Positions 56,262 through 64,000 of a stretch of 64,000 nucleotides of DNA are shown in pieces. The notes under the pieces are model-generated. The model saw only the letters and a list, made by a program, of their open reading frames with translations. It had not been told where the DNA came from and made no database searches. Positions within the stretch are counted from its first letter, which is position 1; every line of letters begins with the position of its first letter. Origin of the DNA: Guillardia theta CCMP2712. Taxonomy: Eukaryota > Protista > Cryptophyta. Both the position numbers and the translations under genes were made by a program. The stretch covers positions 28,153 through 92,152 of the forward strand of contig NW_005434495.1 of the NCBI RefSeq assembly GCF_000315625.1, given 5' to 3'.

Positions 56262-56277
56262 GGGTTTAGGGTTTAGG
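56262..56277 (+). repeat. Interstitial telomeric tract 1 (GGGTTTAGGGTTTAGG)
   Basis: Plant-type TTTAGGG repeat, directly visible. Confidence 0.85.
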
Positions 56278-56280
56278 ACT

Positions 56281-56356
56281 GAGCCGGCCCTTAGTAAGAG
56301 CAGCCGGCCCTTAGTAAGAGCAGCCGGCCCTTAGTAAGAGCAGCCGGCCCTTAGTA
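56281..56356 (+). repeat. 20-bp repeat GAGCAGCCGGCCCTTAGTAA, ~4 copies
   Basis: Directly visible; abuts the telomeric tract. Confidence 0.95.
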
Positions 56357-56514
56357 CTGAGAGCATGCTGCTCCGACTCTGCGGCGCGTAGGAAGAGCGC
56401 AACGGGACAGGAGGAAGCTGCGAGCAAGTTCTTGGTATAGTTCAAACAGCTTTCTAAGTATGGTACTGCAGTATGATGAGAGCGTTCGCAACCACGCAGG
56501 GCGAGCGCTCTGGA

Positions 56515-58556
56515 AGCTGCATCTTCGATGACTGCTGACAGCTCGCTGACGAGCTGGCATGTCCTCTTGGCTTGACGGAGATGCTGCCTCCATTGTGATC
56601 CCGGCTCTCCAGGTCTGTAAACTCCAGCCACTCTCCCTCGCTCTCCTCCTGTCGCTGCGCTGCGTCGCTGGTGCCCCGCTGACCAGCCGCCTCAGAGTCA
56701 GGCTCCTTGTCGAAGCCGACTGCTTCGAGCTTGGTTGCTGCGCCTTCGAGATAGAAGGGCAGCTCCTTCATCATGCGTCGAGCATCCTCCGTGGAGCCGA
56801 GGAGGATGCATAGCTTGGACCCGTTCCAGGACTTGGTGTTCAAATCCTCCTCCATGTCGATGCCTTCCGAACGTTGATCTCGAGCCTGTTAGCGATCTCC
56901 AACAAGACTCTCTTGACTCTTGCGATAGACGTGTTGCCGCCGTTGCACAGCCCCTCCATCTCCTTCCTCGTGAAGCGACCAGATGCCGCCGTCGACTTGA
57001 TGATGATCTTGATCTCCTTGCCGTCCTTGCCGCCTGCCTTCTTCTACATCCTTGATGCCTTCTTCAATTTATTTCTGGACACAAAGCGATCAGCTGTCAA
57101 CTCGACTGCGAGCGCCTCTCTGATCTTCGGGTCCTCGCTGAACAGAGTCAGGTGTACTCCCTCCATCGCTTCGCTCTCTCGGAAAGCTCGAAATGCTGTA
57201 TCATTCGCCTCTGGGCAGCTCGAGGAGACGATCCACTCCACCTCCCTCTGTCTCCAGATGACGTTGGCCCCTACAGCGATGAAGCCTTTCTGACCTAAGC
57301 CTTTGTGGACTTGCTGTCCTGGCGCCCCAGCGACCAGCATGCCTGCCAGCGGCTGGAGTTGGACCGCTGCAAGGGACTGGCGCAGCAGCTGATAGCGATA
57401 GACGGCAGCTATCTCAGCCGTTGTCATGCCGCCCAAGGTTAGCAGGTGAGTCAGCTCTGCCAAGCTGCCCCCTTTGCCCCAGGGTCCTCTCTTGGCTCGA
57501 ATCTTGAAAGATCGATCGTGCATGATGCTCACATGTACAGCTGTGAACTTGCGACCATCGATCGCGAAGTCCTCTCTTCCCTGCCAGAGCTTCTCCGCTT
57601 GTGCATTGCGGAGGAAGGAAACAGTCACCGGGATCTCCTCAGCACTCGCTATCTCGGGTCTATACGGAGCCTTCCACATGATTGCTTTACTCTCTTGCAC
57701 TGAGTCTACGATCAGTCCGATCTCTTCAAATTTCTTCTTCAGCTTTTCTTCATGGTTGACATACACCGAGGAGATGCCCAGGAGAGTCATGGAGATGAAG
57801 GAAGTCACCTCGTTGCCTGCTGAGGCGGTGTATGTCTCGACCTTCTCCTTCTTGGCTTCTTCAATCTGCTGCATAAACCACTCTCTGGATGCGTCACTCC
57901 ATCCAGTCATCGCTTCTTGCAGAAACTCACGTCGTGCCTGCTGACATGTCGAGCGGATGGCTTCTGCGATAGCGTCGGGGGTGCATCCCTCCACAGCCTT
58001 GCAAGCCTGGGCTGTCCTGCTGTTCGGATAACGCTTCGCGAAGCTCTTCACCCTCTCGACGAGATCAGCTTCGAGGACAGAGGCATCCACAAGTCCGCTC
58101 TGCGTGTGCTAGGTAGTTTGCATGGCTTGTTATCACCTTGCTCTATTCTAGTCTAACAGGGATCTCGTGACCTGGCAGTTCGGCCCGACTTGGCTGGCCC
58201 TTATGGCAGCCGTGCTTCTGCTCTGCTCCCTCCTCTGATATACTTCAGTGGTCTTCCCCGGCCTCAGCCAGTGGAGTTTCCTCCGCCTGCCTTGGCCTGG
58301 GTCGTCCGTGCTTTCAACTTGTGTTGCTTCCTCGTCTCCGACACACCTTGGCGGTCTCGGCCGGCCTTCGGCCAGTGAGTGAATGAGGGATAAGGTGGTA
58401 GGTGGAATGCATATGGGTCCCTGGAACTCACGTCCCTTCCGAGTCCCCCGGGCCTCGGTCCGGACCGGGCCCGAGAGCCCGGCCGGCCTCCGCCCGGCCT
58501 CCTCCTCCCCCCTCCCCCACCGGCTTACCTGCCCTTACCTTCGTTGCTTGCCCCAT
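56515..58556 (-). pseudogene. ORF1-like (RRM-type) gene of unit A, disrupted by a stop at 57044 and downstream frameshifts; possible first exon 58556-58539
   Basis: 348-aa ORF 57044-58090 is homologous to 60035+ and 62913+. Homology continues past the stop in other frames (SWNGSKLCILLGSTEDARRMMKELPFYLEG; WLEFTDL; MEAASPS). Confidence 0.7.
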
Positions 58557-59138
58557 GTCCACCTCATTTATTTCTTCCTCCTTCCCCCCATGGGGCCCAC
58601 AGCTCCGCTCCGCCTCTTGTCCACCTCTATCTGCAGAGCGTTACAACACGCGCAAGCCTGAAACAGGCTACAAGGAATGGCAAGCAGCAAAGCTCACCAT
58701 GGAACGTAGACCTAACCAGATGGAAAGGCGAGAGAATGGCCAAAAACGCGCAGGCGAGCTTCAGATGACCCAGGTAGCCGAAGATGCATGGCTAGAGGAG
58801 AGATGGAAAGACGGAGCGGCCCTGCAAATACCAGACAGGTCAGCTCAGGGGGACATCCTGCCATACCCCCCTCCACCACCTCCCGCCCCATGCCCCGTCT
58901 CTCCACTCCAGCCACCTTCCCCCCCACCAGACATGCACGCAGAGACAAACTCGAAGCACGACAAGGAGACTAGGGGGGAGGAGGAGCCATCAGCCCCAAC
59001 GAAGATGCAAGAGAGGTACGCGTCCCACCTTCAATGGGCATCGGAGGCGGAGGAGCAAATCCTAACAGCAAGCAGCAACGCACACGAGGCTACCACCGAT
59101 AGGTCAGTGCACTCAGCATGGGTGGAAACCCACAAGAG

Positions 59139-59175
59139 GGGTTTAGGGTTTAGGGTTTAGGGTTTAGGGTTTAGG
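59139..59175 (+). repeat. Interstitial telomeric tract 2, ~5 x TTTAGGG
   Basis: Directly visible. Confidence 0.95.
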
Positions 59176-59946
59176 AGCCGGCCCTTAGTAAGAGCAGCCG
59201 GCCCTTAGTAAGAGCAGCCGGCCCTTAGTAAGAGCAGAGCCGGCCCTTAGTAAGAGCAGCCGGCCCTTAGTAAGAGCAGCCGGCCCTTAGTAAGAGCAGC
59301 CGGCCCTTAGTAAGAGCAGCCGGCCCTTAGTAAGAGCAGCCGGCCCTTAGTAAGAGCAGCCGGCCCTTAGTAAGAGCAGAGCCGGCCCTTAGTAAGAGCA
59401 GAGCCGGCCCTTAGTAAGAGCAGCCGGCCCTTAGTAAGAGCAGCCGGCCCTTAGTAAGAGCAGAGCCGGCCCTTAGTAAGAGCAGCCGGCCCTTAGTAAG
59501 AGCAGCCGGCCCTTAGTAAGAGCAGCCGGCCCTTAGTAAGAGCAGCCGGCCCTTAGTAAGAGCAGCCGGCCCTTAGTAAGAGCAGCCGGCCCTTAGTAAG
59601 AGCAGCCGGCCCTTAGTAAGAGCAGCCGGCCCTTAGTAAGAGCAGCCGGCCCTTAGTAAGAGCAGCCGGCCCTTAGTAAGAGCAGCCGGCCCTTAGTAAG
59701 AGCAGCCGGCCCTTAGTAAGAGCAGCCGGCCCTTAGTAAGAGCAGCCGGCCCTTAGTAAGAGCAGCCGGCCCTTAGTAAGAGCAGCCGGCCCTTAGTAAG
59801 AGCAGCCGGCCCTTAGCCTAAGAGCAGCCGGCCCTTAGTAAGAGCAGCCGGCCCTTAGTAAGAGCAGCCGGCCCTTAGTAAGAGCAGCCGGCCCTTAGTA
59901 AGAGCAGCCGGCCCTTAGTAAGAGCAGCCGGCCCTTAGTAAGAGCA
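59176..59946 (+). repeat. Tandem array of the 20-bp repeat GAGCAGCCGGCCCTTAGTAA, ~38 copies
   Basis: Near-perfect units; four +AG variants and one +CC variant; no spacers. Confidence 0.97.
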
Positions 59947-60034
59947 TGCTGCCCTGCGGCGCGTAGGGAGAGCGCAAGGGGACCGGTGGAAGCTGCGAGC
60001 AAGAGGTTCGTATAGTTCAAACAGCTTTCTAAGC

Positions 60035-61536
60035 ATGGTACTACAGTATGATGAGAGCGTTCGCAACCTGCTGTATCGGAGATCATGCCAATACACGCAG
60101 GGTGAGCGCTCTGGAGGCCACGTCGAGGAGGCCGCCGACCTCGTCGAGAAGGTGAAGAACTTCACCAAGCGTTATCCGAATAGTCGGACAGCTTATGCTT
60201 GCAGAGCTGAGGGGGGATGCACTCCCGACGCTATCGCTGAAGCCATCCGCTCGACATGTCGGCAGGCGAGACGCGACCTGTTTGAAGACTCTCTGAGCGA
60301 ATGGAGCTCAGAGTCGAGAGCATGGTTTATTCAACAGATGGAGGAGGCCAAGAAGCAGAATGTCGAGACATACATCGGCACCGAAGGCACCGAGGGGACC
60401 TCCTTCATCTCCATGACTCTCCTAGGGATTTCCTCGATGTATGTTCGATGTATGTTCGAAGGCAGGACAGAATACGCCATCGAAGGGAGAGTCTTTCGAG
60501 CCACAGAGGTGAGCATTGCACATGACCGGTCGTTCAAGCTTCGAGCCAAGCGAGGACCTTGGGGCAAGGGAGGGAGCCTTGCCGAGCTATCACAGCTCTT
60601 AGCTCTTGGAGGAATGTCGACGGCTGAGATCGCTCAGATCTATCGATTTCAGCTGCTCTCGCAATCTCTTGCAGCCGCAGAGGTACAACCACTTGCGGGC
60701 ATGCTCGTGCAGGGTCCTGGGCAGAGAGGTCGCAAGGGGCCGAGCCCGAAGACGTATGTTGCTGTTGGGGCAAGTACCGGAGCTCTCCAGCAGAGAGAGC
60801 TAGAGTGGGTGCTCAGCTCGCCTTCGACGGCAAGCTGCGAGCAGACCTTGGCCTCGTTCAGAGAGAGCGAGGCGATGGAGGGGGTGCATCTCACTCTCAT
60901 CAGCGACGACGTCAAGCTCAGAGAGACGTTTGCAGTCGAGCTCACAGCCGACACCTTCGTGCCGAGGGGAAAGATTGCCAAGCAAAGGAGGGCACTTCGC
61001 GAGAGAGATCATGCGGGGCGCAGCAGCTTCAGAGTACAGATCAAGTCGAGGTCAAGCATGAGCACAGGCCGCTTCTCGAGGAAGGAGATGGAAGCGCTGT
61101 GCGGAGGAGGTAACACATCGATCACGAGAGTCAAGCGAGCCATGTTGGAGTTAGCAAGAAGAATGAACCTCAAGCTTGTCAGCGTCGAGGTCGAGGAGGA
61201 TCGTGACACGCTCAGCTGGGATGGGAGCCTGATAGCTCTCTCCCTGGCGACCAAGGCAGAGGCTCGACGCTTGATGGAAGACATGCCCTTCTACTTGGAA
61301 GGGATCCTGGAAGTCAAGCTGGAGGCGGTGGGGTTCAAACCCACTGTCAGCTCTCAGGAGGAAGAGGAGTGCGAGGAGCAAGCCCAAGAGCCCCAAGCCG
61401 CCGGGCAGCAGCAAGGCGCTGGATGGCTGGAGCTCAGCGACATCGACAGGATCACCATGGAAGCAGCGTCACCGTCAGGGCCAGTCGACCAACAGGTCTT
61501 GCTCGACCTCTCGACGATGCTCTTGGAGACATCAGA
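60035..61536 (+). CDS. ORF1-like protein of unit B (RRM-like folds; in-frame internal deletion; runs into gap)
   Basis: Open for 500 codons; homologous to unit A and C ORFs; lacks ~58 aa present in C. Confidence 0.65.
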
Positions 61537-62095
61537 NNNNNNNNNNNNNNNNNNNNNNNNNNNNNNNNNNNNNNNNNNNNNNNNNNNNNNNNNNNNNNNN
61601 NNNNNNNNNNNNNNNNNNNNNNNNNNNNNNNNNNNNNNNNNNNNNNNNNNNNNNNNNNNNNNNNNNNNNNNNNNNNNNNNNNNNNNNNNNNNNNNNNNNN
61701 NNNNNNNNNNNNNNNNNNNNNNNNNNNNNNNNNNNNNNNNNNNNNNNNNNNNNNNNNNNNNNNNNNNNNNNNNNNNNNNNNNNNNNNNNNNNNNNNNNNN
61801 NNNNNNNNNNNNNNNNNNNNNNNNNNNNNNNNNNNNNNNNNNNNNNNNNNNNNNNNNNNNNNNNNNNNNNNNNNNNNNNNNNNNNNNNNNNNNNNNNNNN
61901 NNNNNNNNNNNNNNNNNNNNNNNNNNNNNNNNNNNNNNNNNNNNNNNNNNNNNNNNNNNNNNNNNNNNNNNNNNNNNNNNNNNNNNNNNNNNNNNNNNNN
62001 NNNNNNNNNNNNNNNNNNNNNNNNNNNNNNNNNNNNNNNNNNNNNNNNNNNNNNNNNNNNNNNNNNNNNNNNNNNNNNNNNNNNNNNNNNNNNNN
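61537..62095. other. Assembly gap (N run)
   Basis: Ns. Confidence 1.
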
Positions 62096-62597
62096 AAATG
62101 AGAAAAAATGGGGCAAGCACCGAAGGTAAGGGCAGGTAAGCCCCTTCCGAGTGGGGAGGGGGAGGCGGGGGGGGAGGAGGCCGGGCGAAGGCCGGCCGGG
62201 CTCTCGGGCCCGGTCCGGACCGAGGCCCGGGTTAAGGGACGTGAGTCCCAGGGACCCATCCACAACCCACTTGCCACCTCATCCATCAGCCACTCACTGG
62301 CCGAAGGCCGGCCGAGACCGCAAAGGTGTGTCGGAGCCGAGAAAGCAACACAAGTAAAGCACGGACGTCCCAGGCCAAGGCCGGCGGAGGAAACTCCACT
62401 GGCTGAGGCCGGGGAAGACCACTGAAGTATATCAGAGGAGGGAGCAGAGCAGAAGCACGGCTGCCATAAGGGCCAGCCAAGTCGGGCCGAACTGCCAGGT
62501 CACGAGATCCCTGTTAGACTAGAATAGAGCAAGGTGAAAACAAGCCATGCAACCTACCTAGCATTCTAATAAACTCAACTACTACTACTACTACTAC

Positions 62598-62622
62598 TAG
62601 GGTTTAGGGTTTAGGGTTTAGG
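62598..62622 (+). repeat. Interstitial telomeric tract 3, preceded by an (ACT)n run at 62578-62599
   Basis: Directly visible. Confidence 0.95.
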
Positions 62623-62767
62623 AGGACTTACATGATCGGTTACTCACTTGCATGAAGAAACTCGAAGGAAGGGGAATCAGGATCCGACTCCAACTAGCAA
62701 AAGAATCTCAGAGACACATTCAAGAGGCAAAGGAAATGGCCAAGCAAGGAAAACAAGCATTCGCCTC

Positions 62768-62803
62768 GGGTTTAGGGTTTAGGGTTTAGGGTTTAGGGTT
62801 TAG
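62768..62803 (+). repeat. Interstitial telomeric tract 4, ~5 x TTTAGGG
   Basis: Directly visible. Confidence 0.95.
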
Positions 62804-64000
62804 CAGGCCGCCCCTTCCCGAGGCATGCACATCCGCGGCGCGTAGGGAGAGCGCAAGGGGACCGGTGGAAGCTGCGAGCAAGAGGTTCGTATAGTTCAAA
62901 CAGCTTCTAAGCATGGTACTACAGTATGATGAGAGCGTTCGCAACCTGCTGTATCGGAGATCATGCCAATACACGCAGGGTGAGCGCTCTGGAGGCCACG
63001 TCGAGGAGGCCGCCGACCTCGTCGAGAGGGTGAAGAGCTTCGCGAAGCGGTATCCTGGTAGTAGGACAGCTCAGGCTTGCAGAGCTGAGGGGGGATGCAC
63101 TCCCGACGCTATCGCTGAAGCCATCCGCTCGACATGTCGGCAGGCGAGACGCGACCTGTTTGAAGACTCTCTGAGTGAATGGAGCTCAGAGTCGAGAGCA
63201 TGGTTTATTCAACAGATGGAGGAGGCCAAGAAGCAGAATGTCGAGACATACATCGGCACAGAAGGCACCGAGGGGACCTCCTTCATCTCCATGACTCTCC
63301 TAGGGATTTCCTCGATGTATGTTCGACAAGAAGAAAAGTTGAAATCGAAGCTTATGGAGCTAGGTCTCATGGTAGACTCAGTCGATGGAGTCGACAAGGC
63401 CATCATGTGGAAAGCACCTTACAGACCTGAGATAGCACGAGCAGACGACATCTCAGTCACCGTCTCCTTCCTTCGGAATGAAGCAGCCATGGAGCTATGG
63501 GAAGGCAGGAAAGAATACTGCATAGAAGGGAGAGCCTTCCGAGCCACAGAGGTGAGCATTGCACACGACCGGTCGTTCAAGCTTCGAGCCAAGCGAGGAC
63601 CTTGGGGCAAGGGAGGGAGCCTTGCCGAGCTATCGCAGCTCTTAGCTCTCGGAGGAATGTCGACGGCTGAGATCGCTCAGATTTATCGATTTCAGCTGCT
63701 CTCGCAATCTCTTGCAGCCGCAGAGGTACAACCACTTGCAGGCATGCTCGTGCAGGGTCCTGGGCAGAGAGTTCGCAAGGGGCCGAGCCAGAAGACGTAT
63801 GTCTCTGTTGGGGCAAGTCCGGGCACTCTCCAGCAAAAAGAGATAGAGTGGGTGATGAGCTCGCCTTCGACGACAAGACAGGAGCAGACCTTGGCCTAGT
63901 TCAGAGAGAGCGAGGCGATGGAGGGGGTGCATCTCACTCTCATCAGCGACGACGCCAAGCTCAGAGAGGCGTTTGCAGTCGAGCTCACAGCCGACACCTT
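62804..64000 (+). mobile_element. Telomere-associated unit C (single diverged repeat monomer + module M + ORF1 62913-, premature TAG at 63897; runs off window)
   Basis: Near-identical to unit B across M and the start of ORF1. TCG in B is TAG here, and homology continues after the stop. Confidence 0.7.

Follow-up and report, generated by a model that had tools for sequence, protein, structure and literature searches.

ORF1-only retroelements between telomere tracts of Guillardia theta and a LINE partner with a Dualen-like domain set

We analysed a 64,000-nucleotide (nt) window of the genome of the cryptophyte alga Guillardia theta CCMP2712, corresponding to positions 28153-92152 of contig C179. 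The contig is 92152 nt long, so that the array described here, which occupies the window from position 56262 onward, lies at the right contig end. In it, short tracts of the repeat TTTAGGG alternate with three retroelement units and with fragments of long interspersed nuclear elements (LINEs) that encode a reverse transcriptase (RT). The three units belong to non-autonomous families that carry only the first open reading frame (ORF1) of a LINE; units 2 and 3 are of family A, and unit 1 is a chimera of families A and B. Very probably, the region represents the proximal portion of an array, at a chromosome end, of LINE-type elements that insert site-specifically into double-stranded TTTAGGG.

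Four telomere tracts are present in the window and every one is G-rich on the plus strand, exactly as had been predicted from the sequence; the two-unit TTTAGGG 14-mer matches 7 times in the window versus 0 in 100 shuffles. Genome-wide, four consecutive repeats occur 811 times in the forward and 964 times in the reverse orientation (controls 0). At left contig ends they lie on the minus strand, at right ones on the plus strand, and this placement identifies TTTAGGG as the true nuclear telomere repeat. The Guillardia assembly is of the Sanger era, and distances to contig ends are documented for the retrieved contigs. The one assembly gap in the array lies inside unit 2. Its flanks are 561 nt apart in a complete copy elsewhere in the genome (L005), compared to 559 N in the window, and thus both sides of the gap fit one continuous element. 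The ORF1 stop is expected ~480 nt into the gap, and no frame spans the whole of it.

The complete ORF1-only unit is ~3 kb long, contains a single ORF and has a constant order: an array of 20-mers, a 5' untranslated region (UTR) with the ATG, ORF1, a 3'UTR, a terminal box and an (ACT)n tail. Our reference copy, L005 (contig C223, minus strand, 3472 to 421), reads as 20-mer array, 5'UTR, an ORF of 717 amino acids (aa), a 529-nt 3'UTR, TAGCATTCTAATAAA, CTCA(ACT)3 and telomere repeat. A Pfam search with ORF1 and the complete copy returned no significant domain, and neither an RT nor an endonuclease; no RT profile match of the genome falls inside the window region, in agreement with the original prediction that it holds no RT. 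The 20-mer AGCCGGCCCTTAGTAAGAGC is present in 3.8 copies after tract 1 and in 38 copies after tract 2. The ~170-bp segment M, which had been set apart as a module of its own, consists of the 5'UTR together with the opening ~32 codons of ORF1 (59947-60130, with the ATG at 60035). M and ORF1 each occur three times in the window, one ORF1 being inverted. A cassette of 20-mers, M and ORF1 had been proposed to follow three of the tracts immediately. It is complete after tract 2; after tract 4 it is found in a reduced form, with a single diverged 20-mer-like unit ahead of M and ORF1; after tract 1 the 20-mers and M are in place, but the ORF1 there is inverted and 99% identical to family B. Tract 3 is followed by a 145-bp RT-LINE fragment and no cassette. 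A segment that had been likened to a pseudo-long terminal repeat is an ordinary 3'UTR, with one direct and one inverted copy. The ORF1 of unit 2 carries an in-frame deletion of ~165 nt beside an 11-bp tandem duplication (60434-60459), with most of the first RNA-recognition motif (RRM)-like domain gone, and that of unit 3 is closed prematurely by a TAG at 63897-63899. Unit 1 has been rearranged into a chimera of four pieces, the inverted block of which may be a repair product or an assembly error.

Table 1. Features of the telomere-retroelement array at the right end of the window (window positions; APE, apurinic/apyrimidinic endonuclease)
Feature	Positions	Strand	Description
Tract 1	56262-56277	+	~2 units; proximal array boundary; upstream window DNA unique, without element sequence
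Unit 1, A-like 5' end	56282-56516	+	20-mer x3.8 (56282-56356), 5'UTR, ATG, ~20 codons, 26-nt deletion; cut, joined to inverted DNA
Unit 1, family-B segment	56513-58107	-	Positions 272-1859 of the copy on contig C64, 99.0% identity; ORF1 without last ~160 codons
Unit 1, family-A 3'UTR	58107-58629	-	93.5%; without terminal box and tail; fused directly to the family-B segment
Unit 1, second RT-LINE fragment	58629-59137	+	C48-peptidase/APE ORF, 98.4% to the copy on contig C28; 3'-truncated, capped by tract 2
Tract 2	59138-59175	+	~5 units; last register TTTAGG, then AGCC
Unit 2, 5' array	59176-59946	+	38 copies of the 20-mer
Unit 2, 5'UTR (M) and ORF1	59947-61536	+	ATG 60035; open up to the gap
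Assembly gap	61537-62095		559 N inside unit 2
Unit 2, 3' end	62096-62599	+	3'UTR, terminal box TAGCATTCTAATAAA, tail CTCA(ACT)7
Tract 3	62600-62622	+	~3.5 units; canonical register start after tail; TTTAGG end, then AG
RT-LINE fragment	62623-62767	+	145 bp of the second RT-LINE ORF2 C-terminal region, 99.3% to the copy on contig C2, truncated at both ends
Tract 4	62768-62803	+	~5 units; added at the GGG microhomology of the cut LINE fragment
Unit 3	62804-64000	+	Family A; one diverged 20-mer-like unit, 5'UTR, ORF1 from 62913; leaves the contig end

Family B resembles family A at ~80% nucleotide and ~60% protein identity, and has its own 5' repeats of 19-23 nt and a tail of the form CTCACA(TAA)n. 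Over the 5'UTR and the first ~32 codons, family A (59947-60130) and family B (for example L011:2222-2334) are ~90% identical, as against ~60% for the ORF protein; this points to conservation of a promoter or of a signal for translation or packaging, or else to an exchange of sequence by recombination. On contig C223, a tandem C/T-rich array with a period of ~38 nt (L005:4060-4300) lies just proximal to the element stack and is unrelated to the elements.

The 717-aa ORF of the complete copy is 100% identical to GUITHDRAFT_121332, one of a family whose ~38 paralogues are annotated as hypothetical proteins. All 20 of the 20 family members compared could be aligned, with 45 invariant columns. Among the ORF1-only copies, many of which are intact at 690-717 aa, the ratio of nonsynonymous to synonymous substitution rates (dN/dS) is 0.13-0.49, and these copies are under purifying selection. 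A LINE-like, RRM-containing ORF1 had been proposed for the units. The relationship to LINEs is borne out, in that family-A ORF1 aligns end to end with the ORF1 of the autonomous LINE described below (30% identity over 689 aa, E=3e-77), and two RRM-like domains can be recognised, but the structural model behind the latter is of low confidence. The mean predicted local distance difference test score (pLDDT) of the whole model is 49.8, and it is interpretable only in the two RRM-like domains, residues 383-493 and 123-219, which superpose on RRMs with middling Z values of 8-9.6 and a root-mean-square deviation of 2.5 Å over 78 residues. A search of the ESM Atlas with ORF1 gave no usable match. A 461-aa protein in EukProt entry P0032, labelled Heterocapsa arctica, shares 99.1% identity with the family-B ORF1 of G. 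theta; it probably stems from a G. theta transcript that strayed into this transcriptome by cross-contamination. If so, family B would be transcribed.

The autonomous partner was found at other contig ends. The best RVT_1 matches of the genome lie there, in the same polarity as the ORF1-only units and within open frames of up to 2504 aa. The LINE is ~10 kb long, and its copy on contig C64 comprises a telomere tract, a 5'UTR, an ORF1 of 716 aa, an ORF2 of ~2500 aa and a 3'UTR. The latter closes with the terminal box common to the ORF1-only units, ATCG(ACT)4 and telomere repeat. ORF2 has an RT above the Pfam cut-off (RVT_1, E=4e-35, aa 1168-1421) and, N-terminal to it, an AP endonuclease (APE) at aa 450-633 (Exo_endo_phos, E=6e-8; 33.2 bits, cut-off 24.5). 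A C48 peptidase is weak in this first RT family and is detected by Pfam at E=2.6e-6 in a second. In the last 274 aa of ORF2, a CCHC motif and the residues PD, R and K...Y are invariant in 30 homologues. The structural model of this segment (pLDDT 94) finds R2 proteins as its best Foldseek matches (E=4.5e-9, template-modelling score 0.69-0.72), followed by other PD-(D/E)xK nucleases, and on this model the C-terminus of ORF2 is predicted to be a CCHC motif with a restriction-like endonuclease (RLE). A possible RNase H fragment had been named among the features of the family; Pfam gave no RNase H match in ORF2 at E up to 5. A PDB sequence search with the C-terminal 954 aa of ORF2 gave no match, and no SET domain was found in the autonomous LINE. 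The best PDB match of the RT is R2 (1.2e-22), ahead of L1 (1.7e-18). On the LINE, the 145-bp fragment from the window maps between RT and CCHC motif. The ORF1-only families outnumber the autonomous element by ~10:1. In the second RT family, a copy on contig C28 is divided into a C48 plus APE frame of 812 aa (L022:5573-8008, minus strand) and an RT-to-RLE frame of 1729 aa (L022:235-5421, minus strand), compared to the single ~2500-aa frame of the first family; this is either a frameshift of that copy or a real difference.

The partner bears on the classification of the system, which the original prediction could not assign to a known family. The cryptophyte Dualen elements Dualen-1_GCr as well as Dualen-5_CCu carry the set C48, APE, RT, CCHC and RLE (Lescot et al. 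2016, PMC5029228). The Guillardia partner has the same set, including both endonucleases, and by its predicted domain architecture it matches the cryptophyte Dualen type. The published elements are single giant ORFs of 5287 aa reconstructed from transcriptomes, with SET and RNase H domains (PMC5029228), whereas the Guillardia partner is without SET and without detectable RNase H; that study mentions neither a target site nor a separate ORF1 or ORF1-only derivatives. A Penelope-like affinity, which had also been considered, partly on the strength of an apparent intron and the segment likened to a pseudo-long terminal repeat, does not fit a partner whose RT is of LINE type with APE and RLE. We tried membership of the Athena/Coprina group specifically and rejected it, given that the RT matches RVT_1, R2 and L1, that two endonucleases are encoded, and that the repeated segment is a 3'UTR with one copy inverted. 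The Repbase clade name RTETP was considered as possibly telomere-related; the papers give the name only, and it was dropped.

The three element types have a common 3' end, in which a simple-repeat tail comes after two conserved boxes, TTAGACTAG and CTAGCATTCTAATAAA. The terminal and upstream boxes are identical in the LINE, family A and family B, the 3'UTRs of which are otherwise dissimilar. The genome holds 154 occurrences of the terminal 15-mer box (control 0), and in 53 of the first 64 sites a telomere repeat lies within 45 nt downstream. With the addition of a site on contig C11, which differs in its upstream base, 54 repeat-flanked sites were available for the analysis of tails. The LINE accounts for 5 of them, with the tail ATCG(ACT)n; family A accounts for 15, with CTCA(ACT)n, and family B for 34, with CTCACA(TAA)n. 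Tail lengths vary, with n of 3 to 8 for (ACT)n and 0 to ~10 for (TAA)n. Every tail joins the telomere repeat as ...TA/GGGTTTAGGG (the slash marks the junction), which is a single register for the LINE, A and B. The boxes TTAGACTAG and CTAGCATTCTAA (L005:431-542, minus strand, and homologues) are invariant in the LINE, A and B, and the ~40 nt between them diverge. The two 3' boxes can form a 9-bp stem that closes the 3' end (9 invariant pairs, -5 kcal/mol), and as a lead we consider these paired boxes a candidate recognition element.

The 5' junctions are also in register. In family A the sequence is TTTAGG/AGCC in ~24 of 27 sites, with a constant phase of the 20-mer. The 5'-truncated LINE fragment at 62623 also follows TTTAGG/AG, and the register therefore belongs to the cut in the target, not to the element. 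Among the retrieved loci, 18 of 48 telomere tracts end in the TTTAGG phase, versus ~7 expected. The few internal copies sampled (for example on contig C50) have telomere repeats at the 5' junction too, as would be expected if they had inserted into internal tracts. A Logan contig assembled from another run shows telomere repeat, three 5' repeats of ~22-23 nt and the family-B ORF1. Runs from lake-water, freshwater and runoff metagenomes hold ~0.3 of the sampled 31-mers of window positions 62096-64000, which is odd for a marine alga; these matches may come from carry-over in the laboratory, from close relatives living in freshwater, or from noise in the index.

The arrays are polar. The minus strand carries 37 of the 40 terminal boxes that lie no more than 40 kb from a left contig end, and the plus strand carries 55 of the 60 others listed, the count covering 100 of the 154 sites; M, the 3'UTR and the top RT matches have the same polarity. 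The 3' tails point toward the contig end, with the G-strand as the sense strand. Copies that break this polarity or lie far from an end (C72:432720-438513, C14:12122, C118:23040, C144:3862, C3:943700, C26:734097 and C134:163895) may have arisen by inverted duplication, old fusion or misassembly; on C72, an inverted block that includes telomere repeats lies near the right end. The arrays also show erosion. The 3'-truncated copies L002 and L009 are cut inside ORF1 with telomere repeats directly after the cut, in accord with the rounds of breakage and telomerase healing that had been postulated. The 145-bp fragment in the window stops at a GGG where the copy on contig C1 continues beyond; this stop, with tract 4 directly behind it, bears the hallmark of a break healed by telomerase and of segments shared between chromosome ends.

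We consider it likely, with a probability of roughly 0.85, that the units are ORF1-only, HeT-A-like elements mobilised in trans into double-stranded telomere repeats, with terminal breakage, telomerase healing and exchange between ends superimposed. The core of the original prediction, a family that inserts into telomere repeats, is sustained by the presence at other contig ends of a LINE with a homologous ORF1 and the same terminal box, type of tail and junctions. The further idea that the family extends telomeres in the manner of HeT-A or Athena is not: with the sense sequence on the G-strand, priming of the copies by the G-overhang is impossible, and insertion must follow a nick of the C-strand in duplex repeats. 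This requirement fits the two endonucleases and the fixed registers. In the mechanism that we propose, the RNA of the ORF1-only element would be packaged by its own ORF1 protein and reverse-transcribed in trans by the ORF2 protein of the LINE, which would recognise the shared 3' end. The C-strand would be nicked at about TTT^AGGG (top-strand notation), where the UA of the tail could pair with a primer TA. After a top-strand cut at TTTAGG^, the cDNA would be joined upstream, so that the sense sequence would end up on the G-strand, as in silkworm SART1. Later, distal erosion or breakage, addition of telomerase repeats at G-rich microhomology, further insertions and exchange between chromosome ends could together give units alternating with short telomere tracts. 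The 5' 20-mer array may have the role of a promoter.

Several observations weigh against this account. The paired 3' boxes never vary, and the proposed stem thus has no covariation behind it. The shared ends are the one sequence feature that points to mobilisation in trans. LINEs are often 5'-truncated, and in-phase full-length 5' ends are unusual for them; in family A full-length 5' ends predominate, and the 20-mer array is always in phase. Repeats in Sanger assemblies tend to end contigs, and proximity to an end is by itself weak evidence. The inverted pieces of unit 1 find no account in simple target-primed reverse transcription. Finally, the order 3'UTR, tail, tract and LINE fragment is common to C1 and the window, so duplication at the DNA level between chromosome ends also builds arrays.

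This last point is what one would expect if the units were a subtelomeric family akin to Y', amplified at the DNA level only, in which a short telomere invades an internal tract and is extended by break-induced replication with no retrotransposition. Such copying also predicts intact 5' ends after tracts and truncated distal ends, both of which are observed, and is compatible with units of one polarity. It leaves unaccounted for a defined 3' terminus with a variable tail held in common with a LINE that encodes RT and endonucleases, identical terminal boxes in three dissimilar 3'UTRs, a 5'-truncated LINE fragment in the same register, and the homology of ORF1 to that of the LINE. DNA-level copying probably contributes but cannot be the origin of the units, and as a full explanation we regard it as improbable. 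Even less probable is endonuclease-independent attachment at the terminus, whereby RNA is reverse-transcribed onto the chromosome 3' overhang in the style of HeT-A/TART or Athena. The location of the arrays, the HeT-A-like ORF1-only partners and the Athena-like short tracts between units would all suit it, whereas extension of the G-overhang would place the antisense sequence on the G-strand, where the sense sequence is found; moreover, the partner has two endonucleases of its own, each junction keeps to a fixed register of the repeat, and the sampled internal copies have telomere repeats at their 5' junctions.

An equally slight chance attaches to the possibility that the alternation and the inversion are collapse or chimera artefacts at a Sanger-era contig end. 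The estimated-size gap inside unit 2, the end of the contig inside unit 3 and the odd inverted joints in unit 1 are the kind of features that raise this suspicion. Artefacts of this sort do not explain the same junction sequences at more than 100 sites on many contigs, a gap length within 2 nt of that of a complete copy, or the same 5' junction in the contig of an independent run, and the inverted joints of unit 1 remain the sole part to which a misassembly could still apply. Somewhat less remote than these alternatives, though still unlikely, is that the ORF1-only families are a semi-domesticated layer of chromosome-end maintenance alongside telomerase, more than parasites of the Dualen LINE. 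Their ~10:1 excess, the purifying selection, the full-length 5' ends and the in-phase arrays of 19-23 nt speak for such a role; the 5' arrays could reflect reiterative, telomerase-like copying, or serve as promoters specific to chromosome ends, or bind proteins and thereby buffer or cap ends that are eroding. If true, this would be a second independent retroelement-built telomere zone besides that of insects, and the first in a telomerase-positive protist.

Insertion of ORF1-only elements and their LINE into duplex telomere repeats, the account that we favour, has its closest likeness in SART1/TRAS1 of Bombyx mori (R1 clade), where an endonuclease also mediates insertion at one fixed site in double-stranded telomere repeats. 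The SART1 tail is joined to the AGG of TTAGG, that is, TT^AGG (PMC7265360), whereas the Guillardia tails join the (A)GGG of TTTAGGG. Both have the sense sequence on the G-strand and telomerase-type repeats between copies. They differ in ORF2, which in Guillardia has ~2500 aa with C48, APE, RT, CCHC and RLE compared to APE and RT in SART1, and in the tails, which are (ACT)n or (TAA)n compared to poly(A); Guillardia further adds abundant ORF1-only partners, 5' 20-mer arrays and a cryptophyte algal host. Membership of the SART/TRAS group was thus rejected: the fixed telomeric site is there, but the RLE, the C48 peptidase and the tails other than poly(A) depart from the R1 architecture. The HeT-A/TART/TAHRE elements of Drosophila (Jockey clade) are similar in that HeT-A, which has only ORF1 (gag), outnumbers and depends on RT-encoding relatives, and in their head-to-tail arrays at chromosome ends. 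They are attached at the chromosome end with an oligo(A) tail toward the centromere and replace telomerase, whereas the Guillardia elements have the opposite orientation, insert into repeats and coexist with telomerase repeats. We likewise rejected a terminal element of the HeT-A/TART type, as the Guillardia tails face the contig end instead of the centromere.

Other telomere-concentrated retroelements interspersed with short telomere tracts are Athena/Coprina, MoTeR, Zepp and GilM/GilT (PMC10088271). The Penelope-like Athena/Coprina differ from the Guillardia elements in their RT class, in having no endonuclease and in the opposite logic of their orientation; MoTeR and the Gil elements are CRE-like and have only an RLE; Zepp is L1-like with poly(A). 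We know of no ORF1-only partners in any of these, and to our knowledge Drosophila HeT-A is essentially the sole case of a telomeric ORF1-only partner. Mammals have LINE derivatives with ORF1 retained and ORF2 lost, the HAL1 (half-L1) elements, but these are derived from L1, dispersed and not target-specific. For the Dualen/RandI clade, no target specificity was found in the searchable literature; Dualen-4b of Chlamydomonas inserts genome-wide with long target duplications (PMC9977147). Our searches of the literature on telomeres, subtelomeres and non-LTR (LINE) elements of Guillardia and cryptophytes found no description of the present system.

Few lineages are known to harbour LINEs specific to telomere repeats, namely insects, an anole lizard, Giardia, Chlorella and Magnaporthe. 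In Guillardia, telomere homing and ORF1-only partners come together in a cryptophyte alga, on a two-endonuclease LINE of apparent Dualen type. The system is an independent origin of telomere-homing retroelements, and by analogy the array may be seen as an algal parallel to the telomere transposons of the silkworm and the fruit fly. For the annotation of the genome it calls for caution, dozens of Guillardia gene models for hypothetical proteins being retroelement ORF1s. For the study of LINEs, it offers a case of 3'-end recognition with tails other than poly(A), and a natural system for asking which endonuclease makes which nick.

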